Shown piece after piece: positions 3,351 to 30,720 of a stretch of DNA of 64,000 nucleotides (its first letter is position 1; the number at the start of each line of letters is the position of its first letter). Made by a program: the position numbers and the translations under genes. Under the pieces are notes generated by a model. It searched no databases. It worked only from the letters and a program-made list of their open reading frames with translations, and was not told the origin of the DNA. Source of the DNA: Octopus bimaculoides. Its lineage: Eukaryota. The DNA is taken from contig NC_069002.1 of NCBI RefSeq assembly GCF_001194135.2, forward strand, positions 37,413,433 to 37,477,432. The letters are read 5' to 3'.

Positions 3351-3440
<90 letters not shown>

Positions 3441-4420: not shown

Positions 4421-5365
4421 AAAGAATTTGATTTACAAGAATTTATCAATATTTTTAAATGGTAAGCTCTATTTTTGTAAACCCTTTCAAATACCTTTTT
4501 TTAAAATTTTTTTGTCTTTTATCTTTCTTTTCAAAAAAGTGAAAAACTGAAGAAAAAAAGACTAATTCTTATTTTGGGAATATCTTCAAGTATTTTATCT
4601 ATTATCTATTTTTACCTACTCTTCTAAATCCTTATATAATGTAATTTATTTTCTGGTGTGCTCCACACTCATAGAGGAACAAAGTTTCTGAAACTGCTGT
4701 CTATGGATGTAGAGAGAGTAGGTACTGAAATTAAATTATCAAAAATAAAGAAAAAGAAATATGTTATTTTGTAATTATTTTACTCTGAAAAGTGAATGAA
4801 AGAACAGCATAGAGCTTTCCAGCAAAGTTTCCTTTGCAATGAGTAAATAACAGCCACTGGAAAAGGAATTACATATACAGCAGAGAGACTGCCCTCTGGG
4901 TGGTTTTCTGCTAATTGCTAAATGATAGTGACACATTTGATTCCCAATTTGTGTATTTTTTCTGATGTGTCTAATTTTTCTGTGTATCCTTTATTAATCT
5001 AGTAGTACTCACTTGCTCAGTAAATATTTCTTTGACCATAATTATTTTTTTTTAATTGTTTTAATGTATTGGTCATGGTTTCTTGCACAACTGCTTCTTT
5101 CAGTGTTGTTGATATCAACATCAGGTCTCATATTAATCATCCTGTATCATGGAAACAGTTGTATTTCAGTTTCATATATTTTCCTTCTGAGGCCAATTGA
5201 CAATTAAATCAGCTGAAATATGCAGACAGTTATATAAATGGACTCTAATGTTGTTACACCCCAAATTATTGTTTTACAACCGTGGTTCTCAATCGCTTTT
5301 ATCCTTATGGACTCCTTTGATTCCTATTTTACTTGGGTGGACCTTCATAACCTGTTGATGTTTAA

Positions 5366-5581
5366 CCCTTTAGCATTTAATCTAGCCATATCCAGTCCAT
5401 ATATTCTACTTGTTTTATGCTTAAACTAGCCAGAACTGGCCTCTCAAACCTACCTTCCAATGCCACCATAAAAATAAGCAATCACATCATCAAAATCTCA
5501 AAGCTATGAAATAATGCAGGATTCAAAATAATGTGAATAAATAAACATTAAAGTTGACAGGATAATTTCAGTATTAAAGGG
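5366..5581. mobile_element. piggyBac-like MITE, copy 2
   Basis: TTAA|CCCTTTAGCATT...AGTATTAAAGGG|TTAA with intact TTAA on both sides. Confidence 0.8.
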
Positions 5582-5740
5582 TTAAAAAATCCTTTTATAT
5601 TTATAGAATTGAATATTATTAGGAATTGTATAAAAAAAAAGAATTGTTGAAAAATAATGTGTTCTGTAAAATTGTAACTGATTTTATGGACTCCCAAGGG
5701 TCATACGGACCTTGGTTGAAATACACTGGTTTACAAGCAT

Positions 5741-6472
5741 AAAGACGGTGGATTGGTAGTGGAGCATTGGATAAAATATTTTGTGATAATCCCCTCCCTA
5801 TGTGCTCTGTGTTCAAATCCAGTCCAGGTTCATTTTTGCCTTTAATCTCTTGATAAAGTTTGGTGTGCTAATATAGTTAACTGTAACTGGCATCACAGTT
5901 TGTAGCTGTTACTTATATCAGAAACCATTGTTGTTGTTGTTGTTGTTGGGTGTTAGCATTAGTGGAGCATTAACCCAAAGGCTGAGCAATGCAGTCTTAA
6001 TTTTAACCTGTGGTTTCGAGTTCAAATATCACCTTTGTTCCTCAGTTTCATAGTGGAGTTGTAAAATTATTGAAGTAGCAGACTAAGATGTCTTGTATTT
6101 AGTTGCATAACCTTTGCTTTTTGAGTTCAAATTCTGTTAATGTTCACTTTTATTTCTATCATCCCAAGGTCGATGAAAGGGCCAGTCAGTCTCATCAACT
6201 ATGCCCCCTCCCCCAACATGTGACTTTGTACCAGGCCACTGCTAGATATTGTTGTTGTTTTTATTATCATCTAAGGCGGTGAGTTGGCAGAATTGTTAGT
6301 GGCATTTTATGTCTTTATGTTCTGAGTTATAATTCTGCCAAGGTCAACTTTACCATTCATCCTTTAGGGGTTGATATAATAAGTAATATATGTGCACTGG
6401 GATCAATGTAATTGACTAGCCCCCTCCCTCAAAATTTTCGATCTTGTACCTATATTAGAAGAGATTATTATT
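5741..6472 (+). mobile_element. Four head-to-tail degenerate copies of tRNA-derived SINE family A
   Basis: Repeated B-box-like GTTCAAAT/GTTATAAT followed by GGTCAACTTT..CATCC. The best copy, 6273-6472, starts AAGGCGGTGAGTTGGCAGAATTG and ends AGAAGAGATTATTATT. Confidence 0.7.
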
Positions 6473-6608
6473 AAAGAGAATATCTTAATGTATTGCTGAT
6501 TCATCACTTGGGGTAACATCTTCAGATTGACCAAATGAACACCAATCTTTCACTGTCAACTCTGTTTCTTCTGGTTGAGAATTAATCGCTTTACCTTGCA
6601 GCACTGCA

Positions 6609-6646
<38 letters not shown>

Positions 6647-8026
6647 CCCTCTTTATGTATTACTTTTTTTGTCTGTCTTTGCCTACCTCTCTCTCTTACA
6701 TTCTCACAGATTGGAAAGAGGGAATGGTGAATAATTATAAATAATTTACTGTTTATTGGAAGAGTGCCAGTCAACTTTATGGTTGTGTGGGTGAAGATAT
6801 TTTACAGGTCACTCAGTCCAAAGGAGGTTGTTTATTTGTTTGTGTGTATGTATTCAGGTTGTACAGAAATGATTGCTTTTGGCTTTTTTCTCTTACCATA
6901 AAACCATTTTTGAGTCTAAAGCAAGTTGAATACACACATTCATGTAATCATGTAAAGTGTGTTTGTGTGCCTGCCTGTCTGCATGCACATTCTTGTGTAC
7001 AATTATGACAACTTGTCTCATTGTTTTTCATACATTTTGAATTCCTATTATGACAACCACTAAATTATTTTGTTTCATCCGAGTACCTTGTTGATAGGGT
7101 CTCTATTTTTTGTGTAAGGAAGAAAAACAGTTGAAGTACAAAAAAGGATATGTATTTGCTATTTATTTCCCAAGTGACTCAAAACATGTTTAGAGAATTC
7201 CTTTCTATCCATTTCCATACATTCTGATGGACTTTTTATAATAACATCAGGAATTGACTTTTTCTCCATATTGACGATGCACAATATACAAAATCAGACT
7301 GTTGGAACTTCTTGTGATTTATATCCTAGTTCTTGCCTCTTCAGTTATTGTTACAACTGTATTTTGAGGGTTACTAAGGCTTCATCCTAAATTCTAACAG
7401 ATAAGTGAATGAAAATATAGTTTAGTTGGTAGCCAAAAGCTTACTGAATCTCTTGATACCCCATATGTCAAAAATGGCAACTCAGTTTTGAAATGCATAA
7501 GGAATAACACACACACACACACACAAACTCTCTTTTATATATATAAGATAACTGGATCTGATAAGACAAGACTTCTCAGCCAGACTTGAGTCTTGGACAC
7601 TTTTGGCAAGGAGGGACAAAGAAAAGCTAAAATAGCAAAAATTGAGGAAGCTCGTGATGTGTTCTGGGTGGGCAGAAAATAACACAAATAGTTTCATACA
7701 ATGGTTTGAATTTTATTGGCTGTAGTGGTTTGGGAGTAGAATCCTTTGTCTCGAGACAGATAAGATATCAAGTAACAAGTGTTAATTGAAAGGAAACTGT
7801 CAGGATGGGGGGGGGGGGGTAAAGTGTAGAGGGGTGAAGAAGGCGCATTTATGGTTTTCTGGAGTTAATTAAATAAACAGAATTTATCTGCTTAATCAGT
7901 TGATGTGATGACAAGCAAGTCTGATCACCTGATCCAAATATCTCTAATCATGTGTTTCAAATTAAGATTAATACTGTCTTGACAAAAAACAACAAGCATG
8001 TTTCATTTCAAAACATGCTAACTTTC

Positions 8027-8061
<35 letters not shown>

Positions 8062-8619
8062 ATGCATACATATGTGTCTGTATGTGATTTTTCTTTATTT
8101 CATCAGCAGAAAGAGTTGTCATTTCTATTTCTTCCATGTAATAATAGTAATTGTTTCCAATTTAAGGACAAGGCCAGCAATTTCAAGGATGTGGGAATAT
8201 TTGATTAAATTAACCCCAACACGTGACTGGTATTTTATTAAGTTCAGAAAAATGAAAAGCAGAGTTGATTTAAGTGAGATTTAAATTCAAAATGTAGAGA
8301 TCCGGAACAAATTACCAGAAGGGATTGTCACCTGTGCTCCAACAATTTTGTCAATCTACTTCCCTCCTTAAATAATCATGATAATGTTGATTTCTAACTT
8401 CTGCATGGCTGCAAATTTAGGAAGGAATGTTGGTGAGTATATAATCTCCAGTAAATGTCTGAATTTGTCATGCTTGGAATCACTGAGAATGCTGAAGAGT
8501 CTCACGAAAGGGAAAGACAAATCTGAAGGAGGGTGCTGTATTGATATTCTCTCAATCAATTAGGTGCCTTAATTTCAGTTTTGTGGGTGGGGTAGAAAAA
8601 ACAGAATATGTAATAAGCT

Positions 8620-9000
8620 GTGTAAAAGATCATTATCATCATTTAATGGTCATTCTCCATGCTGGCATGGGTGGGATGGTTTGGCAGGAGCAGGCCAGGC
8701 TGGAGAGGTGCTTGGACTCCATTTGTCTGTTTTGGTATGGTGTCTATGGCTGGGTGCCCTTCCTAATGCCAACCACTCTGCAGAGTGTGGACTGGGTGCT
8801 TTTAATGTGGCACTGGCATGGGTGTTTTACATGGCAGTGGCATAGGCACTTTTATATGATCCTGGAATGAGTGTTTTTACGTGGCACCATGGTACTTTTG
8901 CATGGCACCATGGGTACTTTTACATGGCACCATGGGTACTTTTACATGGCATTGACACATGTGCTTTTACGTGGCACCGACATCTGTGAACCCACACCAC
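8620..9000 (-). mobile_element. RTE-type 3'UTR/tail repeat containing a degenerate ~22-nt tandem array (TGGCACCATGGGTACTTTTACA)
   Basis: Same CCATGCTGGCATGGGT..GGATGG..CCTAATGCCAACCAC sequence as 3960-4130 and 28105-28400; tandem units at about 8790-8990. Confidence 0.65.
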
Positions 9001-10849
9001 TAGGACTTCTCAGCTGAGAGAAGGATGTAGAGGACAATTCTGATCACAGGAAATAGAGGAGTCTTCAGGTTAAGGAATGCATTCAAGTGGGTAGGAACAA
9101 AAGATTGAATATGTCATCAGTCTTCCCCTTACAGGTCATCAGTGTACAGAAGCTTAATATCATCTCTATTGACTGTTTCTGATGTCTATATATGTGTGCA
9201 TGAAGAGTAGAAACCAGCTCTGTCTCGTCTCACTCATTTCCACACAATTCTTTTTTAGTTCTGCTACATTTCTTTCTCTCCCTCTTTCCTTTTTCCTTCA
9301 TTCCTTCCATTCTTTATGTTTCTTGTGACAATTTCTCTTTCGTCTGCTTCCTATTTTGTTCTGCTTTATTTTCATTGTAAATTCTTCCCTTGCTTTTTAA
9401 ATTCTTAATATCAAATAATTAACAGGACAAATAATTAATAGAATAAAAAAACCCATCTTTACTTATGTTTCTGTAAGTTTCAGATGCATTTTATCGCATT
9501 GCTGCCATCCATTTTTTTGCATTTGTTGATATTATAGTGTTCTAGTGAAGTTAGTTGACTGGAAGATTTCATGAGTACATATGTAGACTTGTGCATTGTT
9601 TTGGGTCTTGTTAAAATTGCACCAGTTTTGTTTCTTTTTAGTATCTGCTGGTGTTACCCGAAAGATTTTGTTCTACTCTTTAGTTTCCAGGGTCATTGCA
9701 CACAGTCTCAGTCAGATTAGTAACCAGTAAACAATACTAAGTGCTTTTTAATCATGCTATTTAGAAACCACTTGTTGTCATGTAACATTAAAACACAGGA
9801 TTATCCTCGCTATATTAATGACTTAAATAGCATTGTAATAATAATTGCAATCTTGATGTTACAAAGAATAGAAATTATATGAATCTTTTCCTTCCTCCCA
9901 CATACTCTGTGTGTTTGCATACGTGTCTGTGTGGACTTAATATCTACTTTTCTATGTAGTGTATTTGCGATAGAAATACAATCCAACCTGAAACTATTCA
10001 ATCCAAATCCATTTTTTTAATACCTTTTTCTTGTGTTTATTGTTTAATCAAAAACCCAAACAAAAGAGGTACTATGTGAGTTTTATTTGCATGCCACTTG
10101 CCTAGCAGGTATATACAACAAAGACCATACTTGCCTTGCTCTCCTCTGGTTGTTGCATGTCCTCTCAAGTTTGACACTTGTTACACATTCTGTATAACTC
10201 AAAGGTCATATAGAGGAATAATAAAAAAAAAATCCACTTTATGATCTCTCATATGATATTACTGATTGTAGGGCTTGCTAAAGACTAACTCTATAGCACA
10301 GTGATATTGAAGCTTATTAACCCAACTTGTCAAAATTTTAGTTTCTGTAATAATTATGTTATTGGAGTATATATATGTATTTTGGTTTTAGGTAAACACT
10401 TAGAGATAGGTTTTTTTTATAACATGACATTGCAGGGAGATTTTTTTTCCAAGACCCATCAACTATTACCTAAAACCTTGAGTACTTCACAGGTTTGCTA
10501 GCACAGTTACACTAGATAAGTGATACATTATCATGCGATATCTGCATTGATTGAAACAACTTAACAGTCAGCAATTATGTGATGTCTAATGTCTATCTGG
10601 ATCTCTGGTGTCCAACCATCTAGGAGTCTGTAATCATGTGATGTCTTTTTTTGTGTGTGTGAGGAGCACTAAGTCAGACAAGTGTCAACTATATCTAAGA
10701 AAAGTAGTTTCTTGACTTGCTAGAAAAACCACCCTAATCATACCCATACCATTACAATTCTGCATTATGTCTATAAGTTGATCAACCGCATAGAGTCTAC
10801 ATCCTTACGTGTTATTGCTGTGTTGAATGCAAGCTATTGTTTGTGTTGT

Positions 10850-11080
10850 GTGTGTCTTGATAAATAATTATACCTGTTACGTCTCTCAAAGCATTCGCCA
10901 TAGCTTGCTGAAAGATAGCTCTTGCTGTTTTTGTACCATGTGGTAGATGCAGCCATCTCAATAAGTCAAGTGGGGTACGAACAGTCATTATTTCCTGGGC
11001 CTCATCTGATATTTCAATTTGATAGTATGTTCCAACCAAATCAATTTTTGCAAAATATTTCATACATGCTAACTTGGAGG
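10850..11080 (-). mobile_element. Ty3/gypsy LTR-retrotransposon reverse transcriptase fragment (degenerate)
   Basis: KYFAKIDLVGTYYQIEI..TPLDLLRWLHLPHGTKTARAIFQQAM..DVTGIIIYQDT matches the gypsy RT pattern (KIDL..AY.Q, P.GL....RLPFG, YxDD with the second D lost). Confidence 0.85.
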
Positions 11081-11344
11081 GGTGATTAGGATTATATGTT
11101 TGCTATACTTGACTGTATGTATGTATGAGAAAGGTTTGTTTTATGTAAGTGTATATATATATAGACTATAGCTTCATGTGTGTATAGGTGTAGATTACAA
11201 GTTTTTATGTGTTGTATTGGTGTATATGTTTCAATAAATCCTCAAGTGGTCATGATCAAGTTATGAACTGATGATTATTGTTTTATTTCAACATCTATTG
11301 GAATATCTCAGACACTTCCTCTTCAGACATTATGCAATCTCCAA

Positions 11345-11412
<68 letters not shown>

Positions 11413-11809
11413 GCACACATTTAAAAAATCTTTTATCTTTGGATATTCACACTTCACTTATTAAATACCTTGAGTAATCATTAATTAATATTCTCTACCC
11501 ACCACAGTTATTATTTGCTGTCTAGCTCTATCCAGTTCTTTCAAGGAGGTGAGGTGAAGGAGGAGCAGACATTATTGTTTTTTTTTTATATTTTGCTTTG
11601 TGTTCTGACCATTTTTTTTTTATCTTTTCTTTATTTTGTCTCCCAGTGGTAATACAAAAGTATATTTTCAGAGAATGTTATTATTGTTGTTGCTGTTAGG
11701 TGGGATAATTGATGCTGTGTTAACCAAGACTATTTTTTGCAATTTGTTCTTGTATTACCTCCTCATTGATTATTGCACTTGTGGCAAATAATTATTAATT
11801 TTGGGCAGT

Positions 11810-12035
11810 TGATTGGTAAAATCATTCTAGCATCAGACAAAATGTCTTGAGACCTCATTTGTACCAGTTTTTTACATTCTGTTCAACTTCTGCCAAGGTT
11901 GATTTTTGCCTTTCACCCTTTGGAGTTAATAAGATAAAGCATTGGTCAAGTTCTGTGGTCAGTGATATCAACTTATCTCATCCTCTCAAGATTGCTGGCC
12001 TTGTACCTAAATGAGAAATTATTATTATTATTATT
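11810..12035 (+). mobile_element. SINE family A copy
   Basis: GTTCAACTTCTGCCAAGGTTGA..GCCTTTCACCCTTTGG..CTGGCCTTGTACCTA..AGAAATTATTATT. Confidence 0.7.
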
Positions 12036-13604
12036 TGTAGCTCCATATCTATGTTATTAGAAGTAACAATAATGCTGAAAGGTATATGAGGGTAGCATGT
12101 ATGTTCTGGTGAAATGGCCCAGCTTACTCTCAATATTCAACTGTAGGCTGTAGATGGAAACTAGGAGAGAAAGGGAGATATAGAAAGACAGAGTGAACCT
12201 AGTGTGTATTGGCCTTCTCTTGTTTGCCTTAGGTGGCTGTTCCCCCTATTAGGACTTTAAAAAAATGACATCCTTGAAAATTATTCTTTTGGACCATTTC
12301 GATATTTTTATTATCTTCTCCCACATTGTGTAACTTGCCTTCCACTGTTTTACTAGTTTGTCCTCATCTTATGGTCAATAAAGAAATTATATGATAAATC
12401 ATTATTATAATAAAAAAATAAAAAAAGAATTGTTTCAGTAATTTTATTTTTATTATATGCTTTTCACTACACAACTGACTTCAGCAGTGAGCCTTGAGTA
12501 TGGTCAGTTTTTGTTTTCTATTGCCTGTACTTATGTATGAGTTCTACTAACAGGACAAACTTGATTGCAATATTTCATGGTAATTTCTTTGATAAGCTCA
12601 AGGCTATACCTTTTTATTGACTGGTAAACTTATATATTTGAGCAGTGCTCAAACTCTAGTTTCATGACATTATTTAGAGTTGTTATCAAATTATCCAAAC
12701 AGTGGGTTATTTGGAAATCTAGAATCATTGTTTGTAAGAGTATTAAAAAAATGTTGGTATAATTTGCAGCAAATTTCTGTTAGAGGATGTAACAAGGGCT
12801 CTCATGTTGCAGCTCCCTTTCAAGACATTAAACATGAAGCCTAGATTGCATAGATACCACCCATTTGTTTCCCATGCTATCAACTATTTCTCTTCATCTC
12901 TACTAAATTCTATACAGTCTCTGTCATCTTAATTCAGATAAACACATATCACAAATGCATAGCTAAAATATTGTACAGTTTGATTTACTTTTTGTGACCA
13001 AAATCCATGAATCAGATTGTATTTACCAAACTGACTCTGGCTTGGACATTCTTCTACAATCCTCATCATCATTGCAAAACTTCAGACATATCATCAAAAT
13101 GGTTGGATAACAAACTGAAGTGTGTGGGGGGGGGGGGGGAGAGGTTTCTTTGATTACAACCTTCTACAATATATTAAAGATTTTTTTTTTTAAATGAGCC
13201 AATGAATAAACTTTTATGCTGTCCTTCAGTCTTCTAGAAATAGTAACCAAATCACCTTTAAATAACAGGCTACTCTCTTAAAAGGAAAACATTGTGAGTA
13301 TAGGTCTACTGGATCAAGACTAACCTGGAGCTAAAGAACAACAGCTAATAAGTTATAGTTTGTGAAACATGGGGTTTTCTTCCACAAAGCATGTGTGGTG
13401 TATTGGATTTCCAGCTTCCCATATACTCAGCTATATTCATAGAATAGGCTAAGGGTGTTGAACATATAAGTGTTTGTTCTAAGCCCAGAATCAGTTAACT
13501 TCATATCACTGGCTGAGTTTGAAGAATTCTTTGGGTGATTTCTAACCATTTCACATTATAGGTATGTTAAAGCAAGGTTGACTGACAATATAATAGGGAA
13601 ACAG

Positions 13605-13950
13605 GTAGGGGTAAAAACCCTTTTGGTCTCGAATGATCATGGGATTGCACCTAGAAAGTTCCCTTCCAAGATACAAATCCAGGCAAGGTTGTTTATGGAG
13701 GACCAGCAATCGCCCATGCATGCCAGCCTCCCCTCTCCACACCACCGATGTTGTCCGAGGGAAAAGGCAAAAGGGGCCAGTATAGCTTGGCACCAGTGAG
13801 GTTGCAACTCGTTTCTACAGCTGAGTGAACTGGAGCAGCATGAAATAAAGTGTCTTGCTCAAGAACACAACACAGCCTGGTCCAGGAATCGAACTCACTA
13901 CCTCATGATTGTGAGCCTGATGCTCTTACCACTGAGTCATGTGCCTTCAC
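13605..13950 (-). mobile_element. tRNA-derived SINE family C (CORE-like central domain)
   Basis: Minus strand GTGAAGGCACATGACTCAGTGGTAAGAGC (A box), GAGTTCGATTCCTGG (B box), GTGTTCTTGAGCAAGACACTT (CORE-like); partial copy at 62221-62317. Confidence 0.75.
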
Positions 13951-15619
13951 TGACAGTATATAGCAGTAGCAACAACAACAAAAGCTTTATAGCCACTCTC
14001 CTCTATATCAGATGTTCTAACAACAACTCTTTGAAGTGCTTAAATCACAAGGAGAAATATGTTTTTGTGAAATTTATCAACATTTCAACAATGCAGGGCC
14101 TAAAAGTCTGAAAATGATGCTTCCAATTGGTGAAAAAGTGTTAAAGACAAATGAAAGAACAAAAGACAATGTCTTTGCTTGTTTGTCTCCATAGTAAATT
14201 TCAGAAAAATAATTATTTGAACTTAGACAACTATCATTTTAAAATAAAGTAATTAAAATATAACGAACAAAACAAAATAACAAATTCCATTATGTGTAAT
14301 TACTCTTAATGTCTCAAGTTTTATTTGAAACTACTCACTAAAACTTTGTCTGCAAATACATTCTTTTAATTATTTTAATGAGATTTTTAAGTTGAAATTG
14401 TAACAATTTCTCAACTTGCCATTCTTTTGAGTCACATTGACTCCTGGTAATAATTATTCTGAAAGCTTGCTTTACATCTATATTGCAGTAATCAAGCATG
14501 TTTTTCCTTGGTATTATTTTTTTTTTTTAACATTGAATCAAGTTGGTGTAGACGATGGCCTTGTGGTTGAGAAGTTCACTTCATAATCACATTGTTCTAA
14601 GTTGGATCCACTTTGCAATATCTTCGACAGATATTTGGGTTAACTCATGACTGGAATGTGATAAAAGGAACTTGTGAGAAATCCTGTGTGTGTGATATCT
14701 TTTACACATTGGCAAAATAAAAAAAATAAAAAATGAAAAAAAACAGTGCTTTTTGAATATAAAAAAAAAGTGGTGATATTTGTTGTGTGTCAGGTGATCT
14801 CTTGCTGCTCTAACCACCATAAATGTAGTGAAGCAATGGTTGGCCTTGTTGGAAACATGCAATCACGATATTAAATGTTATTCAGTAATCACAATATTTA
14901 AATGTCTTGCATTATTGTCTTTCATCAATCATTACTTTTCCAGATAGGATTTGGAAGCTGTTTTTATCGTGAGTTAGACAAACTTGGACAGAGTTAGATT
15001 TACATGATTTGCTACATTGTGGTGGTGGTAGCAGGAGGAGGCAGTACGAATGGAGTTTGAGTTCATGATTCATGTATGTGGTTAACAGTTGGACATACCT
15101 GACAGAGTGCTTGTGTATTATACCATATTGCAACAAGGAGGTCTCTATGTTGTCATTCAACCTGCCAGAATCAGCAGCCAAATTTTCAAATCGTAAATCT
15201 ATCCTTGTTAAATGAAGAAGGCTACATTTGACAATGATGTAGTTCCTGATGTACAAACAGACAGGATGATTGTGGTTGGAGCATCTTTGGTCACTGGTCT
15301 GCTCAAACAGAGTTGACCTAGTGCTAAACAACGTTAATCAATGAACAATAAGATAAAGAAGAGAAGTATATCTGGCAATGAAGATGAATTACAAGTAGAA
15401 TGATAAATTGGCCAACCCTATGCCATATTTGATTTGAGCCAGGTTGAAAAACTATTTTGGAAAATATAAACAACAGAATTGTATATATGTTTATTTATGT
15501 TTGGCATAAAACAGAGATTGTACCCGTGAGCCACAGTTTCATTCTGCCAGCACTTCAGTCATCTTTACAAATCAGTAGGTTTGGAGAACTCATCCTTCCA
15601 GAGTAACAACATTGTGACT

Positions 15620-16130
15620 GGTAGCGTCACTGTACAAGGCTTATACGGCTCTCACCAACCACTTGTCTATGCCTAGTTTCTGCATTGACCACCAGATAAG
15701 GGATCAGGGGACCCTGTCAAAGGCTTTCTCCAAGTCAACAAAAACCAGGTACAGATGTTTATCTTTGGCTAGGTATGTCTCCTGCAGCTGCCTTACCAGA
15801 AATATAGCATCAGTGGTGCTTCTGCCTGGCACAAAACCAAACTGCGTCTCATCTAAACTGACTCTCTCCCTAATTAGTTGGGCCTCTCCGCAACTCTCAT
15901 CTCCTGATCCAACAATTTGATACCTCTGTAATTATTTCTAAGGCATCACCTTTACCTTTGTAGCAGTTGACTATGCTGCTGCTACAGCAGTCATTGGGTA
16001 TGACTTCTTCATTAATCACCTGATTTACAATATGAGTGACTAGACCATAACCCACACCACCAGATATTTTAAGCATCTCAGTGGTGATTCTTGAGGAGCT
16101 GAGGGGCTTTCTCTGTCTTCATATCCTTAA
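15620..16130 (-). mobile_element. RTE-clade LINE reverse transcriptase remnant
   Basis: Minus strand EMLKISGGVGYGLVTHIVNQVI..VNCYKGKGDA, then QFGFVPGRSTTDAIFLVRQLQETYLAKDKHLYLVFVDLEKAFDRVP*SLIWWSMQKLG, with stops. Confidence 0.9.
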
Positions 16131-16245
16131 TTGCTTTATCTACTAGGGTACTGTTGATTCAGGTAGCTGGTCCCTCAATTGGATAATAAAATATCTTTAT
16201 CATTCTTAATTTATTTGTCTCTATTTCTATTTTTATCTTTTGCAG

Positions 16246-16275
16246 GTAAGTCAAAGTGGTTTTGAAATCCATTTG
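16246..16275 (+). other. Candidate recursive splice site (AG|GTAAGT) with 30-nt RS-exon
   Basis: CTTAAT branch-like motif at 16205-16210, then an AG-free T/C-rich tract, TGCAG|GTAAGT at 16245/16246, and a second donor TTG|GTAAGT at 16275/16276. Confidence 0.55.
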
Positions 16276-16896
16276 GTAAGTCAGCCATTTTCAGTTTTCC
16301 TCAACTCTGATCTCTTTCCATTCATCCAGCCTCTCCTCTCACTGCTTTCAGAGATTTTCTGTATTTAATGAAAACTGACACGAACGTTTAATATACTGAT
16401 TTGGTTTCACTGAATGTTCCACTGTGTCCAACCATAAATCTGGCAACAGTTCATCACTCAATAAGAATAATGCATGATATATAACATTTCCTTGCTGTGA
16501 ACAGGAGTTACCTTTTCTTGAAAATTTAATTAACCACTGCTTATACTATTTACTACAGGTGGAGGTGTGTATTCTTGCAGCTGTTGTTATTGCTGCTGTT
16601 GTTACCTCTGTTAGCTTATTTAGTACATACATATATATATATATATATATATGTAAATATTGCTTGGTCTTTATATATTATTCATAGCATAAATGTGTGT
16701 GTGCTTGTCTTTGTGTTTGTGACTCCCACAAAATAAGTACATTATTCCTTTCCCAGCTTCTTTTAATGGTGATTGTTGCAGCTAGTGAATAAATACTTCC
16801 CAGAAATGGATATTTTTGATACTGGAATTACAATATTCATTAATGATAATTTTTTGTTCATATCAACTGCCAGAAAATTAAAATGTATAACCAACT

Positions 16897-17200
16897 ACGT
16901 GGTTCTAAGTCCAGTCCCACTGTGTGACACCTTGGGTGAGTGTCTTCTACTATAGCCTCAGGTTGACCAAAGCCTTGTGAGTAGATCTGGGAGACGGAAA
17001 CTGAAAGAAGCCCATCATATATATATATATATATATATATCAGTGTTTGTCCCACCCCCCAACATTTGACAACTGGTGCTGGTGTGTTTATGTCCCTGTA
17101 ACTTAGTGATTTGGCAAAAAAAACCGATAGAATGAATATGATGCTTATAAAAAAAATAAGTACTGGGATTGATACATTTGCCTAAAGATTCTTCAGTGCT
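16897..17200 (+). mobile_element. SINE family B copy with an internal (TA)n
   Basis: GTGGTTCTAAGTCCAGTCCCACTG..CACCTTGGG..GTGTCTTCTACTATAGCC..GGAAACTGAAAGAAGCCC, matching 37910-38066. Confidence 0.75.
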
Positions 17201-18699
17201 CTTTAGCTCCAAGTTGCTTCTGATCAAGCAAACCTATCATAAAAGTGATTCTGGCTATGACCATCTTATCTTTTCTTTTTTAGATAGAGAGCATTATCAA
17301 CATGTTCTTTTCTTAAACAGCAAAGCGTTGTTTGAGGAGGATTGCTTGCTCTTTCTACCTAGTTTAGCAGCCATATAGAAGTTTCTTCATCTCCTTGTAT
17401 TATTTGTCTTTTATCAGATCTACTTTTACTTCTGTGTGTTCCTATGTCACATTCTGTGGATATTTCTAGTTGCCAATCTATATTGAATTGTTGGCACTGA
17501 TGCAAATAGCTACATTAACAATGTATGATGTGTTACTACATGTAACTACAACAACAAATTGTAAATTGATGTTGTTGCAAAAGACTATCTTTATGAACAC
17601 TTATGTAAGAATGTGGCAATGGTGCATGGCTGTGAAATGGGGGTAAGACAGATAGGGGTGGTACTGTAGAGTAGAAATTTCAAAAAGTGTTGATATTCCA
17701 TGGCAAGCAAATATGGGACCAAAACTACTAATGATTGACAATTATTACTGATGAATGACAATTATTACTGATGAATGATAATTATTATTGTTGTTTGATG
17801 ATTATTACTGGACATTGCTGTCTGTTACTCATGATTGTCAGTAATGTTTTTGAACAAAGGAATTGTCTGGTTTTTCTGGATGTAGTGTTATTGTGTGGTA
17901 TGAATGTCTTTGGCTTGATGTGTGCATGAAAAATTACTCTTTGATAAATTCTGGGTTAATTCTAATTTTATAGATCTATGATGAAATGTGTTCTAACTAT
18001 ATACATTACATCTTTACTTTTTTAGACATTTTGTTTTCTTTTTTAGACATTTAGGGCTAGTGTATTTTTTTAGTTAGTTGAACGTGATTTAAAAGTATTT
18101 CAGCTGCTGTTTCTAGACAGTCAAGCATCCATGCAAGGGCTTTCTTGCTGGTTTGTGTTGTTAATGTTGTCATTAGTGTTACCCTGGTGAAGTAGACTTG
18201 TGACCAGCATTCTGAGACCACCCCAGCCTTTTACAGACATAGTATCTCTCACAGCTTTTTGAACAGGCACATCATTTCCCTACATGTCATTGGAAGCGAG
18301 TAACAGGGCTGGCATGAAAAGAGTGCCTATCCATAAAACTCTGTCTCAGAAAGTCCTACACTACCCATGAGAATTGAAACTGTATTCTTGAGTTAACTTA
18401 TTTATCGATATCATATTCCATGTACATACGAATATTTGGTTACAGGAGTCCAATGGACCAATTATCAGTTTATTGCATGAACAATGGAATGCATACATCA
18501 TTCAGATGGAACAAACATCAAATAACAATTTTATTTGAAAGCATTAGCTAATACCAAAAGTGCATTGCAGTCATTTTGCATCCTATGTAGAGCCCATATG
18601 CAAGGTACTACGTACTCCTTTCATTGCATGCACACACCTATGCTAACAAGGAAGCTGTAAATATGAGCCAACAAGGATATAAATAGTTGTTCAACCCTG

Positions 18700-18852
18700 T
18701 TAGAAATAATAGCCAAATCTCCCTTAAATCACACTCTATTAAAAACGATGAATGTACTGTCTGGAAAAAAAAAATCAAAGATGGGACAGTTACAACAAGA
18801 ATACTTTAGGTCAAAGGTCTGCTCGGTCTAAACTGACCTCAGGCTATTACAA
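18700..18852. repeat. Unclassified ~190-bp dispersed repeat (representative copy; further copies near 13232, 20175, 26440, 27690, 34960, 40230)
   Basis: Shared TAGAAATA.CAGCCAAATCTCCCT.AAATCACAC ... GGGATGGTCAC..CTGGAATG..TTT..TCATAGGTCTGCTC..TCAGG.TGACC...CTAAACAAC; occurs in both orientations. Confidence 0.6.
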
Positions 18853-21800
18853 CTAGATTTGGAATTCTTATTAGTTGCCCTCTACAGGGAAAATTTAGCT
18901 TCTGAAAAGGAGATAACCAGGCCCTAGTTGGAGATAGGGAAGGGGACTCTTAAGACCTTGTATTTAGAGGAGATGGCCAACAACTGTTTATTTAAGCAAA
19001 AATTCACTTGCCACTCTGCATATAACAGAACTCCCTCCCATCACAGTCAGCCATGTTTTTGTAGGTTTCTTTTTCTTTTCTTTCTTTTTTTGTAAAATGT
19101 ATTTGTGTTTGTTTGAGATAGTTACTGTTGCCCCTTCAATAGGGCAGGGTTATTAGCGGGTGTGGAGTAGGGGAGGATGTGTGAAGAATGGATAAAAGGA
19201 ATGACACCTGTAAATGTGTAGCAATCAACTAGAAAAAAAGTTTACATTCCCTTGCTACCATTTACAGGAGTAAGTCTGACCCCTTAGCTAATTCTCTTCT
19301 CTTGCTCATCCCTTTCCCCCTCACTTTTGAAATTGTGGTAGGTGGAGGGGTTGGAGTATCAGAGAGACAATGGTGGTTGTGAGAGGGTAGTATCTGAAAG
19401 GATGGATTTACTTGCTTTTGTTTTGATGGAGTGGAGCGTGGTGGTAGGTTGTAGCAATGGACTGAACTACTTAACTAATACATGGTCGCCAACATACATG
19501 ATGATACGAACCCATTTTTTCAAGAAGGGAGAGGGGCTGCATCACACTTCCTCCCACTCCAGCTATACTTACCCCCTCCATAGTGTAGACAAAGCCCATA
19601 GGTAATTAGCAGGTGAGTCAGAAGTAAATTTACTGAGATTTATTTTATTGGCTCCTTCACTCCATCCCTCCCAAACACTGACCATCTCCTTCACCCTCTG
19701 ACCATCATTCTATCCAAACACTGATGTGGCATTTCACTCTTTCCTTCCCATTGGGGTGTGGATGTGGAGGGGTTGTGTTCAGTCCTTAATAATTTTTGGC
19801 CATAAACCAGGGTCATGTCTTTTGGTCATATAACATTCTTTTATTATTATATTTAAAACTAGCAGAGATACCCGGCATTGCTCAGGATTAAAATGGCATA
19901 GAATATCTTGTTAAACGTGACAAAAATGTTTCACTATGTTCAGTATTTACTATCATTCATTTGTTCTGAATTCAAATCATACCAAAGTAGACTTAGTCTT
20001 TGGTGTGTGTGTGTGTGTTTTGCTATTCATAAGCATGAGTGTTTTTTTTTAATATATCTTTACGGTAAAGGAAGGAGGCAAGTCTGTTGAGTCTGAACGA
20101 GACCTGTAGTTATGGACTTGCAGTCCCAACTAACCGCCTCATACACAAGGAGGCCTGTATGTGACCACACTATCTGCTAAATAGCAGCCAAATCTGTCCC
20201 AAGTCACAACCTGGTGTCTCAAAAATTGCAGTGATATGGATAATGTAATGATGGGTGTACACTGGATAATTGGTCACCTGATTTCACACCACCCCCTTGT
20301 CTTTGGATGCTTTTAGTAGATTCTATTCTTTCTGTTGCATGTTATTGTGGCCAGGTCTTCAATCTAAGGATAATCTTTGATCTGAGAGTAACTCCATTTT
20401 GTCCTCCCACCTATTACAGATGCCTTGAGATTGGTAATGATACTGTCCTTCCTTTTCTGAGTGATAAAAGAAAAATAATTTTCAGAAGTAGTTCTGAATG
20501 CACTTAATGAAAAAATAAAGATGAGACAGTCTTCACAAGAACATCTTTGATCACCATTTTGCTTGATTAATCGAGGTTGACCTGGGCTTTAGCTCATAAA
20601 ACAGAGTGTATAGTTATTGTATCTTTTGTTTTTCCTACTGTGCAGTCACAGTTCCCATAAAGTACTAACAATGTTTATTCATTATTACTAATTTGGTTAT
20701 TAATAGTCAATCATCTTGCTTTGTTCAAGTCAATATTGCTTCCATCAATCATTTCATATGAAGTGGCAAGAAAGTCCTGCCATTAGAGATTCATAAAATA
20801 TAAAGAGATCTATGTCTGTTTGTCAGTTTACCTACCAATCAATATATCTGTATATCAATCTATCTAACCAGCTTTCAATCAGCCTCTCTGTCTCTCTGCT
20901 TGACTGTCTGTCAAAATCTATGTATCTCAGTCCACTATCCTAGTCAATCTATCTAACAATCAATCTATGTTTGTTGATCATGCGATCTGAAGAAACACCA
21001 ACCTTTGAAATGAAATGTTCCCAAATCAATGTCTTGTTTATTCTACCTTTCATTTGGTTTTCAGACTTATCTGGGACTACATTATCATGCAATGTGTCCT
21101 TTCCTTTTAAGCTGAGATTTTGACTGTGGATTCTTGTAGCTTGTGTGTGTGTGTGAGAGAGAGAAAGAGGGAGAGAGAAGACTTGTTGATAGATTTGTAA
21201 TGCACAAACAAGAGGCCAAATTCTGCAACAATTATTGTTTTGTATTTTGGTGTAAGGCTGGTACTTGTCCAGTTGGAAGTGTCTATTTGTTGTCATAAAT
21301 ACAAAACCCAAATAAATACTAGCTTCATGTATAGATTTATGCTCAACTCAATTTATGCCAACCACAAACATCAAGTTAACATCAATTAAGCAATGACACA
21401 CATCATTACAACACAATTCTGCTTTTTTACTTGTCTCTCTCTATCTCTCTCCGAGACCTTGAATACTATAAAACACCCATGCATTAAAATAGCTGTGAAA
21501 AATAATCTTTTCTGCTAGCTTACCTGTGTTAACGATTCTACTCACATTTGATATATTCAGTTAAATTATACTTCTCCTGCTGTGCTAACCAATTCCAGCA
21601 TTTAGGCCGTTCCAAAATACACTGCATTGTAAAAGGTATTCAACTACACACAGCTATCATATTCCAATCTGAAAGATCAATCCCAAAATGACAATATATG
21701 CATGCTGTGTTCTTAAGACAAACAAGATCAAAAGCATATCAGTTTGACTGTATAACTCTACCATAATTATTTCACTACAGCACTTTACCCACACCTACAC

Positions 21801-23109
21801 AACAGCAACCACTGCAAATGACATAATTGGTAGAGCAGTTTATGCCTTACCAATCTACCAAAATAGATATAAAATTAGACATCTTTCACTCAGATTAAGT
21901 TTGACATCAAATAACTTCACATGAAATACTCTCTGTTTCTGTCTCTCTCTTTATATATGTTTTATATTAACATAAATGATTCTCATACGTGAAAACGTTT
22001 TTAATGTTTATAACACATTAACATCTTCAAACATATCTAGTCTTGCTGTTGAAGAAGAATATTGGATTATATTCAGTTTTATTACAAAATGATTTTCCAA
22101 TCATTAAAAGTATGTCAGCTCTGATCAATTTGTCTTTTTATTCCTGTGATAGAGTATATGTTACCTAATGCAGCCTTCCTTTTTGTTGGTGCTTAAAATG
22201 TCAATTCAACTGGAATTAAATCGACAAATGATCAAAAACATTCAAGTCATAAGCCTCTGTCTTATTTTCAACCGTGGCATATTGGGAACAACGTTTTCCG
22301 ATATTTACTTCCTTTATTAAGACACACATGGTTACCCAACCTGAGGGAAGTGCAAGAAAAGGAGAGAGAGTGGGAGGTGGCAGGATAGAGATGGTGGCAA
22401 AATGCTGGGCATACTCACAAGGAACGAGGATCAGAATATAAATGGGATGGTTGAGTCGAGGAAGAGAGAGATGTATAGATGGTGGTATATATATGTGTAT
22501 ATATATATGTGTGTATGTGTATATACATGTACATATATATATATATGTATATTCCTGTTGTAATGGTGCAATAACAAGTGAGAAAATATTTTTGGAATGA
22601 TGGGGAATATGTTGATGGTCAATAGTCAACAAAATCAATAGGAAAACTTTTGTAGTTGAGCCCCACCAGATGATAGTATTGTCTAATGCCTGGGGATGGG
22701 GATGGGGCAGAAGCTAATAAAGAAGAGACAAAAATGTAAAGTAGAGGCATGCAAAACAAAATTGCTGTTGCCATGGTGAATTTTAAAGTGAAGATAAATG
22801 AATAATAAAACCAAATGTAATCAGCAAATAACCCCCAAAATAATCTTGTAAATTTATAAATAAATATAACACTGAATTATAATCTTGTTGGGGCAGAGAC
22901 TTTTCTGTAAGTGTAATATGTAAAAATAAGTTTGTGTTAGGAGTGGTGTTAGGGTTAGGGGTCAGGGTTTTTACTGAATGTGTGCTAATCTCTTTGAAAA
23001 CAAACATTTTGCTGTATCTTTGGGCNNNNNNNNNNNNNNAGATACAAAAATGAAAGAAACAAATAATAATAATAATAATAATCCTTTCCACTGAAGGCAG
23101 AAGGCTTGA

Positions 23110-23399
23110 GATTTTACTTCTTTCCTCATTGCTTCCTGCAACTCATCTAAAATCTTCTGATCTTCCTCACTCGTCGGTGCCAGTTGTCCCCTCCTCGTTG
23201 GTAGCACTATTATTATTTTTTCCTTCAGATTCTTCTTTGGTTCGAGATGCATCTCTGGTGTTGTTGTTTCTCTTCCCCACTGCCTGGTCTGTCCTTCCCC
23301 AGTTCTCTTGTGATCTCTTCTGCTTCCAATTCTGTCGTCCACTTTCTTCTCCTAACAGCATTAGCTTCATCAATTAATCTCTGCTCAGTCACTTTAAAC
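23110..23399 (-). mobile_element. Probable R4/Dong N-terminal ORF fragment
   Basis: MFKVTEQRLIDEANAVRRRKWTTELEAEEI resembles the recalled N-terminal VTEQRL.DQ...I...WL...E.EEI motif. Confidence 0.5.
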
Positions 23400-23810
23400 A
23401 TTATTATTATTATTATTTATTGTCGTTGTACAACTTCTAATGCTGGAGATGTACTATGGTGTCAGCTGTTCACTGCCAGTGAACTAAGGTAACACCTCTT
23501 ATTTTTCGAGCACCATCTGGAATATTCGGACAATTCCAAGCAGTGCTGTTTTCTGCAAGTGTTCCACCCTTATTGCAGCCCCTATTTGTTCCATGTACTT
23601 CTCAAGATTGTTGCTCACTGTTCCCAGGGCTCCGACAATTATTGGTACTACTACCACCTTTTTCATCGACTACAACTGCTTAACCTCCCAAGCTAACCTG
23701 TCATATCTTTCGACTTTTCTTTCTTCCTTATCGCATACCTTGTTGTCAGTTGGGCATGCTATATCTATGATCCAGCATTGTTTGCTTTCTTTTTCAATTA
23801 ACACTATAGT
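23400..23810 (-). mobile_element. R4/Dong-clade LINE 3' end with restriction-like endonuclease and (TAA)n tail
   Basis: IEKESKQCWIIDIACPTDNKVCDKEERKVERYDRLAWEVKQL..VVVPIIVGALGTV..LQKTALLG fits the PD-(D/E)xK RLE C-terminus; ends in AATAAATAATAATAAT. Confidence 0.85.
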
Positions 23811-24152
23811 AGTAGTAGTAGTAGTAGTAGTAGTACCCTTGTAAAAAGTTATTGTATTCTTAGTAACATTCGTGTTGAAGTTAAGTTTATAGGTGACATT
23901 GTTCCAAACTGCTGTGAGGGTTATCAAGTTACCACTAACTTTGTACCATTCTGTTGTGTGTGCTGCCTAGCTGCCCTATTCACCAGATCAATAATTCCAA
24001 CTGTAATACAAGTCTGCTGTGTGGGAGGGCGACTAATTGTGGGGTAGATGGGTGGGGGTGGGGGGGTTCTTTTCAGTTCACTTTTGTTCAGACTCATTTT
24101 TGGGGTTTGTTTTGATGGTCTTATATAATTAACATGACTTTATACATACTTG

Positions 24153-24202
<50 letters not shown>

Positions 24203-24949
24203 TATATATAAATACATACACACATATATATATATACACACATATATATACATACTTATATATATATACATATACACACATATATATATAAATATATGTG
24301 TGTGTATGTATGTATATATAACAAATTAGAAGCAGTATTAGTAATGTAAACATTATCGATCGCACATACACAATGTTTGTATTTTGTTCATTCACCAAAT
24401 TCATGGTGAGATAGTGTTTGGTGAGAGACTCCTTTGTGACACTGGATGTTAAAATACCTGAAGGTCAAAGACCAAATGAGACAACTTGCCTCAGAACAAA
24501 TCAAAAATGGTGGATACTGGTACTTCACCATTATTGTGCCCTTATCCACACCATGCACCTGGTTCTTTATTTCTCAGCGTTCTTGTGAAATAGAATCTTG
24601 CCTCTGTTTCTATTCTGAATTGCACTTCAGCTGTGCCATATTTTTTTCCATGGGTAATGTGGGTCTTGTGTTCTCACACATACCAAAGCACTTGTGTATT
24701 TGTATCTTAGTTACAATGCAATTTTGTTCTAGGGCAGTGGTGCATAACTTTGCGTCTTGGAGTGTTTTGTATTACATCAGGTGGAGAGGGAAAACCTGTT
24801 TAATTGTGAAAATTTAATGTCCTGGCCATAACAAAGTCTCAGAAAAAGCAATTGAGATATGATGATCTAAAGTGTAAAATACAATGACTGTGGTTATTGA
24901 AAAAAGGTGATTATTATATTGTTATTGTCGGAGCTTTGGGTTGAAGAGA

Positions 24950-25130
24950 TTGAAGAGATTGGGGTAAAGACAGAGCTTTTGAAGAAAATACTTTTGCTTG
25001 GAACTGCATGACTCTTCAAGAGATCTGAAGGGAAAGCATTGCCTTATTCCACTGGCTGCAGACAGCTGACACCTTGTTACGTTCTCCAGCAAAGTTTCTG
25101 TGTTAAACATAAATAATAATAATAATTATA
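24950..25130 (+). mobile_element. Short R4/Dong 3' end, same family as 23400-23810, opposite orientation
   Basis: CCTTATTCCACTGGCTGCAGACAGCTGACACC..CTCCAGCA..TAAATAATAATAAT aligns with the reverse complement of 23400-23500; encodes ELLKKILLLGTA. Confidence 0.7.
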
Positions 25131-28104
25131 CAGACATGTATGTGATCATGTATACACATATACGCAGAATACATTCCCAGCAACCTATCATCAGCTGTTG
25201 GTGTTAGTAATCCAGAGCAAAAGAAACAGAAGATTAACTCCTCTATCTTTCTAATCCACCTGAAATCTAACTCGTTAATTCCTGACATATTTTTAATGAG
25301 TCTCTCCTTCTTTTTCCCCCTCATATATTATTCATATATTTTGATATCAGCTGTTTTACCAAAACTGCCATTATCACTCTCATATCTTTTGAAAATTGAT
25401 TTTCCTTTTTATATATTTTTACTTTTGCTTTTTAGTTTATTGAGTAAAAATGAAGTTTTCCAAAATTGGAGTTTTATCACAAAGCTTTCTCTTCTTTCTT
25501 TTTTCTCTTTCTTTATATATTCTGAGACTGTAATTTTCTAAAAATTCTAGTTTTGCTGGTTGACGAAACCTAATCAGTGCAGGTTATAAAATTATTCACA
25601 TTTAAATTATTTTGCATATTGCTATTTTACTAGTGTACTACTCGTTAAAAGTAACGAGGCTTATGTCTGCCTCGGAAATTCTTAAAGGGTTTCCTTCAAA
25701 CCTTGCTTCAGTTTTTTTCTTGTGTTTCATTTTGCCTTCTTGTTAATCTTTTCCCCCAACTCATTTCATTACATCTTCTTTTCCTCTCTCTATATTTCCT
25801 TTGCCTTTTTCTCTCACTGACAATCTTCCTTTTTTTCATTCCCAACATCTCTCTCTCTCTCTCTCATGTATGAATTTCCTTCTTCTCTCTCACTCTTTCT
25901 CTATTACCCTGTTATTCTATCCTATTCACTCTCCAACTCTCCCTCTCTATTATAGAGTTTTCTTGCCTTTCTTTCTCTCTTACTTGTGCTTTCTCTCCCT
26001 CATTCTTTATTCCATTCCTCCCTATATTTTACTGTCTGCTCGTCAACCCTTTTTTATGGTTGTACCTGTTATAAACCTGGGATACATAGAACCAAGACAG
26101 TCATATAGTAATGGCTATTAATTCTTCTCACGGAGTAGACTGCAATATGTGTAACTACCAGTAAAGTAAATCCAAAAACCTGGTCTTCAGCAATCCAGCA
26201 GTACTAGTAATAATGTCCACCAGTATTTGGCTGTTGCCTTTGTCTCCATATCGCAAATGCTTCAGATTGTGAGATCAGTGTTGATTGAAAGATAAAAAGA
26301 ACAGACCAAAATACCAACTGGGATTGTTATTGTCTTTCATGTTCTTGGATTCTTTGATATTGATTCATTGAAGCCAGCTCTGATCCAACTTATTTTATGA
26401 TCAAACTTATTCTATCCATAACTCTCCTATTTTTTTGCTCTAGCCTAATTCAATGTGTCCTTTTTTTTTAAGATGGTAGAGTGTGATCTGAGGGATATTT
26501 GGCTGTTGTGTCTTGTAGGATGCTTGACCACTCAAATGAGTGGTTTCCAACCTTTTAACAATGCAACCCATTTCGACTAATCAGTTTTCCTGTGTGGACC
26601 CCTTTTTTAGTATATTCCAGTGAGGCTTAGTTAACATTTCATCCTCTTTCAGTGTGTGTGTGTGTGTATTTAAGCATATATTTCCTCTTCTTCCATTCTT
26701 CCACCATTAACACAATCATTACAGAGAGAGAGTCTATCCAATCCAGTCCAACAAGAAATAGTGGGTTTTTTTCAATTAGTTAAATTGTAGCCTCCTCCCT
26801 CTTTCTGTCCCCTTTTTTTATTTCTAATACACTGCAATCCTCATTCTGCTTTCTCTTTCTCCCCCCCCCCCCCCGATTCCCCTCTTACTCTCTCTTTCTT
26901 TCTCTGGATTAGTGATTTTCTGTGCACCTTGTTACTATCATTACAATCATCATCATCGTCATCATCATCATCATTGTCATCATAGCTTTGTTACAACCAT
27001 CAACATCATCTTAGCATAATCTGCATCATCAACTCCATCATCATCATCATCATCACCACCAGCAACAATCATCATCATCATCAACACAATATCCTTATCA
27101 GTAACAGCGTAACTGGCCTACATATGTATATATAATCATTAACGATATTGTTAATTAATCTTCTGGTCACTGTAACCAGGTGAAGGTTACAACAGTATTG
27201 AGATCAGATGAAATCCAATCAGATTAGGATTTTATTTGGCAGTCAGGGCTTCACCTCCTCTCACCTTGCTCTCTCTCTCTCTCTCTCTTCACTTAGATTC
27301 TGGTGATATTGCTGCTTCACCTTCCTACAGCATTCACTCATGCAACTGTTATTTTTTAAATCCAGGTCAGAACTGATTGAACTGTGTGCAAATCCATTTG
27401 CCACTAGGGGACAATGCCACACATTCAAATATGCCTCCGAAAACCAATTGAGTCTAATGACTGTGAGAAATGTTATCATGTAACTGTTGGCCAAACCAAG
27501 TTATATGGAGATGCAGTCAACCACACAGCTAGTTGGCAGCCGACAGATCCTTTGCTATTACGACCTGAGGACTATTGCATGTTCTGACAATATGGTGGTT
27601 AATTGAATTGAGAGCAGAAGGATGAGGGCAATCTATATCATGAAAATGGTTGAATACACTGAAGTCATATCATATTGTAATAGTTATTTGTTAAGTCCCA
27701 GGTCAACCTCAGTTGAGTAGTCTTATGGTTAGTCATTCCAACCATGACTATCTTATATTTTATTCAAACAGTGCATCTTGGAATACATTATCCAATGTGT
27801 CACACAGTATTTTTGTTCTTGCTTTTTTTTTTAATCTGTAGAGTGTGATTTGAGGGAAATTTGGCTGTTATTTCTAGCCACTTGAGTGACCAGTTAAAGG
27901 TTCCTTTACTGGTTTGTAACAACTGATCTAAGTCTGTTGTGTGTTATTGAGAAGACAATTTAGAAACCACAGAAGCAACAACAACAGATAATGCTTTGTA
28001 TTCTGGGAGATTAAACTAATTAACCTATTTTGAGATCTATTCTAGGAGTGATAGATTTTTGCATGGAAAGATTATTTGTGTGTGTACACACACACATCAT
28101 CATC

Positions 28105-28410
28105 TCATCATTTAACATCCACCTTCCATGCTGGCAAGGGTTGGATGGTTTGACAGGAGCTGGTAAGCCAGAGGACTGTGCCAAGCTCTACTGTTTACTT
28201 TGGCATGGTCTCTATGGCTGGATGCCCTTCTTAATGCCAACCACTTTATTGAGTGGACCGGGTGCTTTTTACATGGCACCAGCACTAGCAAGGTCACCAA
28301 GTAAGTTGCAAGACAAAAATCCCTTAACTGAGAATGGGAGCAGAATTGAGGGAGATAGCTTTGTACCAGAAGATGAGAGGTTAGTGTATGGCAGAGGGAT
28401 AGAAACAGGT
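28105..28410 (-). mobile_element. RTE-type 3'UTR/tail repeat
   Basis: Same family as 3960-4130 and 8620-8830. Confidence 0.65.
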
Positions 28411-28420
28411 ATCATACTAT

Positions 28421-29337: not shown

Positions 29338-29340
29338 GTC

Positions 29341-30689: not shown

Positions 30690-30720
<31 letters not shown>

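Follow-up and report, generated by a model that had tools for sequence, protein, structure and literature searches.

The window analysed here, 64,000 nucleotides of Octopus bimaculoides DNA, carries a TMEM184B-like gene on its + strand, and a 30-nt exon lies in the long intron upstream of the first coding exon of this gene (Table 1). The reconstructed product has 511 aa and contains a Solute_trans_a domain. Among database entries, it agrees best with 'transmembrane protein 184B-like [Octopus sinensis]' (98% identity), and intronic DNA shows only about 82-92% identity to the O. sinensis locus. The protein start MTNN/MTNH is common to O. sinensis, Argonauta hians and the transcript-derived protein of a third octopod. 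Because this start is conserved, the ATG at 36151 is the start codon and all sequence upstream of it is 5'UTR. The N-terminus is Ala/Thr-rich and of low complexity, being encoded by GCA/ACA repeats at 36240-36370 in exon 1, and the differences in protein length among octopods (475, 511, 512 and 576 aa) fall mostly in this N-terminal region. An mRNA contig of another octopod (L003) shows a frame shift (~640-1040) between the N-terminal and the Solute_trans_a parts, with two ORFs called, which probably reflects misassembly or a retained piece.

Table 1. Positions in the window of the gene, its introns and the splice sites around the 30-nt exon. A slash marks a splice junction.
Feature	Position	Strand	Basis or remark
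Upstream intron, 3' part	1..16245	+	Sub-intron of at least 16.2 kb; leader ends absent from the window
Candidate branch site CTTAAT	16205..16210	+	Fits YTNAY, A at 16209, 36 nt before the AG; assigned from the sequence
Polypyrimidine tract and acceptor ttgcAG, used 3' splice site	16211..16245	+	RNA matches start at 16246, with leader A before
GTAAGT at first base of the micro-exon, potential regenerated (recursive) 5' splice site	16246..16251	+	Predicted
30-nt 5'UTR micro-exon GTAAGTCAAAGTGGTTTTGAAATCCATTTG (RS-exon)	16246..16275	+	Four RNA contigs, exact match, exon sequence on both sides
Micro-exon donor TTG/GTAAGTCA, used 5' splice site	16276..16283	+	Contigs leave the genome at 16275 and continue ATGACAAACAACACG (36151 onward)
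Downstream sub-intron, 19,875 nt	16276..36150	+	Junction 16275/36151; 14-N gap at 23026-23039
First coding exon, TMEM184B-like	36151..36570	+	ATG is the first three bases, directly after ttgcag; accepts leader B or the micro-exon
Coding exons	41299-41464, 44829-44919, 46653-46728	+	Reconstructed from orthologous mRNA contig
Coding exons	49130-49221, 50947-51116, 52296 to ~52822	+	Reconstructed from orthologous mRNA contig

The sequence around the 30-nt exon has the layout described in an earlier note on this DNA, namely CTTAAT, an AG-free tract, AG/GTAAGT and, 30 nt further on, TTG/GTAAGT with no ATG between the two donors (16246-16275). In the acceptor ttgcAG/GTAAGT, the AG occupies 16244-45 and the GT 16246-47 of the + strand; the GT of the second donor is at 16276-77. 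The tract (16211-16243) is T/C-rich, with 17/20 pyrimidines when counted over the 20 nt that stop 3 nt short of the AG, and the candidate branch site is identical in the orthologous contigs of two further organisms (B and C). The distance to the coding exon, given before as 19.9 kb, is 19,905 nt (36151-16246), and this exon does begin at its acceptor. The arrangement as a whole agrees with the published definition of an RS-exon (PMC8605326, PMC6224609).

By itself, CAGGTAAGT is within chance: the window contains 2 copies where 0.57 would be expected, and 2 were reached in 10 of 100 shuffles. The composite AGGTAAGT-N20-50-GGTAAGT was found a single time in the window and never in 100 shuffles. 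Seven AG/GTRAGT sites are present in the window, and a good pyrimidine tract was found only at the micro-exon site and at a true exon end (51115). Another AG/GTGAGT lies on the + strand of the same intron at 19611, where pyrimidines make up 8/20 and the tract is not AG-free; having no pyrimidine tract, it is not credible as a ratchet site. Both donors of the micro-exon region carry the same 9-mer GGTAAGTCA (16245-16253 and 16275-16283). These copies form a short direct repeat that brackets the micro-exon and are possibly a trace of the second donor's origin.

Usage of the exon was assessed with RNA-seq contigs aligned to the first 95 nt of the coding exon and then to 16200-16330. Organism A denotes the species of the window and organism B a second Octopus label. 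In contigs that carry the exon, the RNA reads leader A (…CAACCTGACAACCCA), then 16246-16275, then ATGACAAAC… (36151). Over 16200-16330, these contigs match the window at 16246-16275 only, with …TTGCTTCTTTGCGGTCAACCTGACAACCCA of leader A before and ATGACAAACAACACG… after the match. In organism A, they come from three studies: X32 (1005 nt, depth 41), X41 (256 nt) and X20 (646 nt). The sequence by which transcripts of X41 and X32 enter 36151, AGTAAGTCAAAGTGGTTTTGAAATCCATTT(G), equals window 16246-16275. An RNA run of organism B (X27) gave a 590-nt contig (depth 28.8) of the same structure, in which the 30-nt exon is identical and the leader A orthologue is TCGCTTCTTTATGGTCAACCTGACAACCCA. Since the contigs start at 16246 and jump from 16275 to 36151, both splice sites are used precisely. 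The junction 16275/36151 predicted by the earlier note is thus present in RNA contigs of four runs, and the upstream exon joined to 16246 that it expected was found as leader A in the same runs (X41, X32, X20, X27). Its assignment of the site to the TMEM184 strand also proved right, the site being on the + strand of the TMEM184B-like gene and spliced into its first coding exon.

The segment at 16246-16275 has a used acceptor and a used donor, is contained in some mature mRNAs and absent from others, and lies upstream of the ATG, as is expected of a 5'UTR cassette micro-exon. A silent ratchet point is therefore not what we find here: the segment is an expressed alternative micro-exon, and the transcripts that carry it account for ~30% up to practically all in some samples. 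A coding role was considered and rejected, as the retrieved octopod proteins (O. sinensis, Argonauta hians and the third octopod) all have the MTNN/MTNH start. The open frame through leader A and the micro-exon has 20 codons, which is within chance, and 2/10 codons of leader A differ non-synonymously in organism B. Inclusion of the micro-exon changes the context of the start codon from …CCAAG/ATGA (A at -3) to …CATTTG/ATGA (T at -3). We speculate that this exchange of A for T at -3 could lower translation initiation.

For organisms B and C, the region 16114-16520 is covered by orthologous DNA contigs that are single copy. Among 327 single-copy positions compared in these two organisms, 17 differences were found, and none of them falls within 16226-16291. 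For this 66-nt block, the probability of being free of differences is P ~0.01-0.03, and for such a run anywhere in the 327-nt alignment it is P = 0.33, so the conservation of the block by itself has modest statistical weight. The conservation of the motif that the earlier note had asked about is nevertheless seen, with 16226-16291 unchanged in organisms B and C and the exon used in mRNA of organism B. Unspliced RNA contigs of two organism B runs (X27 and X61) represent a more diverged allele or genome, which has a 33-nt deletion at 16300-16332, 9-12-nt deletions downstream and a TC insertion after 16280; AG/GTAAGT, the 30-nt exon and G/GTAAGT are kept in it, a result that says more than the block in organisms B and C. 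Over 16185-16492, these two RNA runs are more diverged than the DNA run X16 of the same label, which is due either to strong polymorphism or to a label that covers more than one species. In four contigs of more distant cephalopods (L004, L007-L009), neither a micro-exon-like sequence nor a ratchet motif was found within 10 kb upstream of exon 1, and the site may lie further away. The O. sinensis locus (L005) reaches back only 10 kb from the ATG exon (from window 27331 on) and so ends 11 kb short of the site. Runs of organisms F and G gave only short pyrimidine-tract matches to the site, and L001 and L002 were discarded because their matches are of low complexity.

Two further elements were noticed in the upstream intron. 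The segment 15524-16182 is a very high-copy repeat, with a DNA contig depth of 10^4-4x10^5 compared to 21x for single copy, and contains an antisense ORF (15897-16076) with a reverse-transcriptase-like stretch (…IPNDCCSSSIVNCYKGKGDA…). It looks like a degenerate LINE fragment that ends ~64 nt before the micro-exon acceptor. A short element at 13684-13880 has very high RNA and contig depth, and reads from it continue into GCAGCCCGGTCCGGGATTCGATCTC…, a flank resembling the tRNA-related portion of a SINE; no tRNA was detected in the window by ARAGORN. No second copy of the micro-exon segment was found in the window. In total, the window contains 1,436 N, in runs at 2250-2666, 23026-23039, 37178-37326, 43985-44012, 53626-53762, 59498-60088 and 63518-63617.

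A second form of the mRNA lacks the micro-exon and begins with a different leader. This leader B (…GGAAATTATACCAAG) is spliced directly to 36151. Its sequence before 36151 is …TAATTGATATAAAAGTCGGAAATTATACCA(AG) in X25, X48 and X32, its end can also be given as …TAATTGATATAAAAGTCGGAAATTATACCAAG with the final bases CCAAG, and its orthologue in the organism B run X27 ends …GGAAATTACTCCA(AG). Leader B thus ends in AAG in organisms A and B, as do the leader-B-like sequences of two further octopod mRNAs; these mRNA contigs (L003 and L006) contain the leader-B-like form only. The terminal 30-mers of both leaders could not be matched to either strand of the window when up to 3 mismatches were allowed, their last 14-20 nt followed by GT are likewise missing from it, and no match to the leader ends was found in any other locus compared. 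As the leader ends are absent from the window, both leaders lie upstream of position 1. It follows that the intron behind leader B exceeds 36 kb, in keeping with the very long 5'UTR intron proposed earlier, and that both pre-mRNAs contain the micro-exon.

The choice of leader and the presence of the micro-exon are coupled without exception in the contigs. Leader A occurs only with the micro-exon (X41, X32, X20, X27) and leader B only without it (X25, X48, X32, X34, X27, X61); neither an A/36151 nor a B/16246 contig was found in any of the eight runs. Contig depth, a rough measure of transcript share, was used to compare the two forms. In X32, the depths are 41.2 for leader A with the exon, 97.3 for leader B and 151.2 for the shared coding contig, and in X27 they are 28.8, 13.8 and 46.2, respectively. 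The two forms sum to approximately the depth of the shared contig, so the micro-exon form accounts for ~30% in X32 and ~68% in X27. In X20 and X41, it is the sole form retained in contigs. Contigs with leader A and the exon show no branch over up to 946 nt upstream, within the exon or on entering the coding exon, also in runs that have both isoforms, and leader A is therefore not an upstream part of leader B. We infer that A and B are alternative leaders, most simply from alternative promoters. Leader usage is sharply sample-dependent, with leader A plus exon alone in X20 and X41, leader B alone in X25, X34, X48 and X61, and both in two runs. These differences between samples suggest tissue-specific or stage-specific alternative promoters.

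The competition model for RS-exons states that such an exon is skipped if its own donor is weaker than the regenerated 5' splice site and is included otherwise (PMC6224609, PMC8605326, PMC6110456). We estimated donor strength as the duplex energy with the 5' end of U1 snRNA, which serves as a proxy for a splice-site score in place of MaxEntScan. By this measure, the donor regenerated after leader B (AAG/GTAAGTCA) has a duplex energy of -10.6 kcal/mol, the micro-exon's own donor (TTG/GTAAGTCA) -9.1 kcal/mol, and the donor regenerated after leader A (CCA/GTAAGTCA) -5.6 kcal/mol; the other donors of the gene range from -5.6 to -11.0. The observed order, in which the B-regenerated site is above the own donor and the own donor above the A-regenerated site, is the order that the competition model needs: according to the U1 proxy, the regenerated site is the stronger one in the form without the exon and the weaker one in the form with it. 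AAG is the general consensus for exon ends, and the AAG of leader B is for this reason not specific evidence.

A mechanism can be proposed in which this ranking sets the outcome. The micro-exon is bounded by a strong acceptor and a strong donor. Its first six bases are GTAAGT, and the joining of a leader would create a new 5' splice site at the junction, whichever leader it is. The micro-exon would always be recognised, as it is constitutive after leader A and its acceptor is transcribed ~20 kb before the competing acceptor at 36151, and the last three bases of the leader would then pick between two donors 30 nt apart. With leader A (…CCCA), the regenerated CCA/GTAAGT would be weaker than TTG/GTAAGT, so that the exon's own donor would be used and the micro-exon kept in the mRNA. 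Leader B (…CCAAG) would first join 16246 and regenerate AAG/GTAAGT. As this site would be stronger than the exon's donor, re-splicing would remove the micro-exon together with the 19.9-kb downstream intron in a second, recursive step, leaving leader B directly on the ATG exon. The predicted recursive intermediate would read …ACCAAG/GTAAGTCAAAG…TTTG GTAAGTCAGCC. Contigs drop rare variants, and the missing B/16246 contig is thus weak evidence in either direction. Raw reads from three RNA runs (X24, X30 and X31, ~6% of each) had no read on 16215-16340 and yielded no intronic coverage that was unique. Raw reads at 13500-19000 and 34500-39500 were almost all repeats, and 98% of them run into unlike sequence.

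For the leader B transcripts, we lean towards recursive removal of the micro-exon after splicing into 16246. All direct observations are of inclusion or skipping in mature mRNA, and they would also be obtained with an ordinary promoter-coupled cassette micro-exon, where leader B is joined to 36151 in one step and the GTAAGT at the exon start is never a donor. Promoter-dependent alternative splicing is a known phenomenon, which counts for such one-step skipping, as does the fact that no B/16246 intermediate is among the contigs, from which rare forms are dropped. Most human cassette exons with an AGGT start, moreover, do not act as RS exons (PMC6110456). Against this, the micro-exon is constitutive after leader A and hence a strongly defined exon, and one-step skipping would have it missing after leader B although the same intron is transcribed ~20 kb before the competing acceptor. 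The sole known cis difference, CCA versus AAG at the junction, ranks the three donors just as the competition model needs, and the perfect GTAAGT, duplicated within the 9-mer at both exon ends, is kept across species. We consider one-step skipping a possible but doubtful explanation.

Another way for leader B transcripts to lack the micro-exon would be that the last exon of leader B is hidden in the 14-N gap at 23026-23039, in which case these transcripts would never contain the micro-exon. This N run does lie inside the downstream sub-intron, and the known end of leader B is its last 32 nt. The gap is sized at 14 N, however, and the sequence that precedes the junction in leader B contigs amounts to 620-993 nt. 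The flanks of the gap are unlike leader-B-like octopod 5'UTRs, a weak comparison as those UTRs are only 66% alike among themselves, and in the O. sinensis locus the 10 kb leading up to the ATG exon contain nothing of leader B. With a gap so small, B contigs so long and flanks that are not leader-like, this arrangement is unlikely. A chance motif or an artefact of a transposable element might be suspected from CAGGTAAGT, which taken alone is within chance, and from the LINE-like repeat upstream. This explanation is refuted, since both splice sites are used in spliced RNA of four runs under two species labels. Exonisation of a transposable element was rejected as well: DNA depth is 10^4-10^5 in the repeat up to ~16182 and 21x, i.e. 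single copy, from 16194 on, which includes the tract, the exon and the donors. Returning to recursive splicing as read by the earlier note, its architecture, strand and position, the use of both sites and the predicted junction have stood, the silent ratchet has not, and the re-splicing is something we infer.

Taken together, 16246-16275 is a genuine, expressed and conserved 30-nt 5'UTR micro-exon of the octopus TMEM184B-like gene, and it can be compared with several known systems. Expressed RS-exons are known from the ~73-kb intron of Drosophila Ultrabithorax, the microexons m1 and m2 (Hatton et al. 1998, as summarised in PMC8605326). As in Ultrabithorax, a very short exon (51 nt there, 30 nt in octopus) lies deep in a very long intron, has a donor consensus right after its acceptor and its own downstream donor, and appears in only a subset of isoforms. 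The Ultrabithorax microexons differ in that they are coding and that recursion has been experimentally shown for them, whereas the octopus exon is in the 5'UTR and tied to a leader, and its recursion is proposed. With Drosophila ratchet points, the octopus site has in common the tract, AG/GTAAGT, a short exon, a second donor, a long intron and a conserved junction (Duff 2015; Joseph 2018; Pai 2018, PMC6110457). The cryptic RS-exons of Drosophila, in contrast, almost never appear in mRNA ('0-nt' exons) and have poorly conserved bodies, while the octopus exon does appear in mRNA and is unchanged, body and junctions alike, among the Octopus genomes compared.

In vertebrates, RS-exons act as a binary switch, for example with an alternative CADM2 isoform, in which the regenerated RS-5' splice site competes with the exon's own 5' splice site (Blazquez et al. 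2018, PMC6224609). Where the site regenerated by an alternative upstream exon is weaker, the RS-exon is included (PMC6224609, PMC5126111, PMC6110456). Inclusion of vertebrate RS-exons is usually rare and adds a premature stop codon; inclusion of the octopus exon is abundant (~30-100% in some runs), and this exon is in the 5'UTR with no ATG and no in-frame stop. Sibley et al. (2015) are reported to have linked RS-exon inclusion to cryptic promoters or exons that fail to reconstitute an efficient 5' splice site. With an ordinary promoter-linked 5'UTR cassette exon, the octopus locus shares two leaders and an internal non-coding exon in one isoform. Such a cassette exon, however, does not need, and usually lacks, a perfect GTAAGT start, and it would not be expected to depend in an all-or-none manner on the three final bases of the leader.

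Recursive splicing is established from work on insects and vertebrates. The introns of cephalopod genes are very long and full of repeats, and it is fair to ask how they are spliced accurately. None of the papers searched ties recursive splicing to octopus, and the few in which it comes up together with cephalopods or molluscs mention it in passing. The locus is a compact natural experiment, with one micro-exon, two upstream exons, the same animal and all-or-none outcomes that are predicted by donor competition, and the donor-competition model is directly testable here in a third animal lineage. Even without recursion, the data provide the correct annotation of a conserved 5'UTR micro-exon and two leaders, all of which a gene model restricted to the CDS would miss. 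As a wider and more tentative reading, which we would place a little short of an even call, recursive splicing would act here as a leader-dependent binary switch, the first documented in a mollusc or lophotrochozoan, with the choice of promoter also setting the translation efficiency of TMEM184B. If this is true, promoter choice would keep (CCA) or erase (AAG) the micro-exon, and the start codon would stand in a poor context whenever it is kept.
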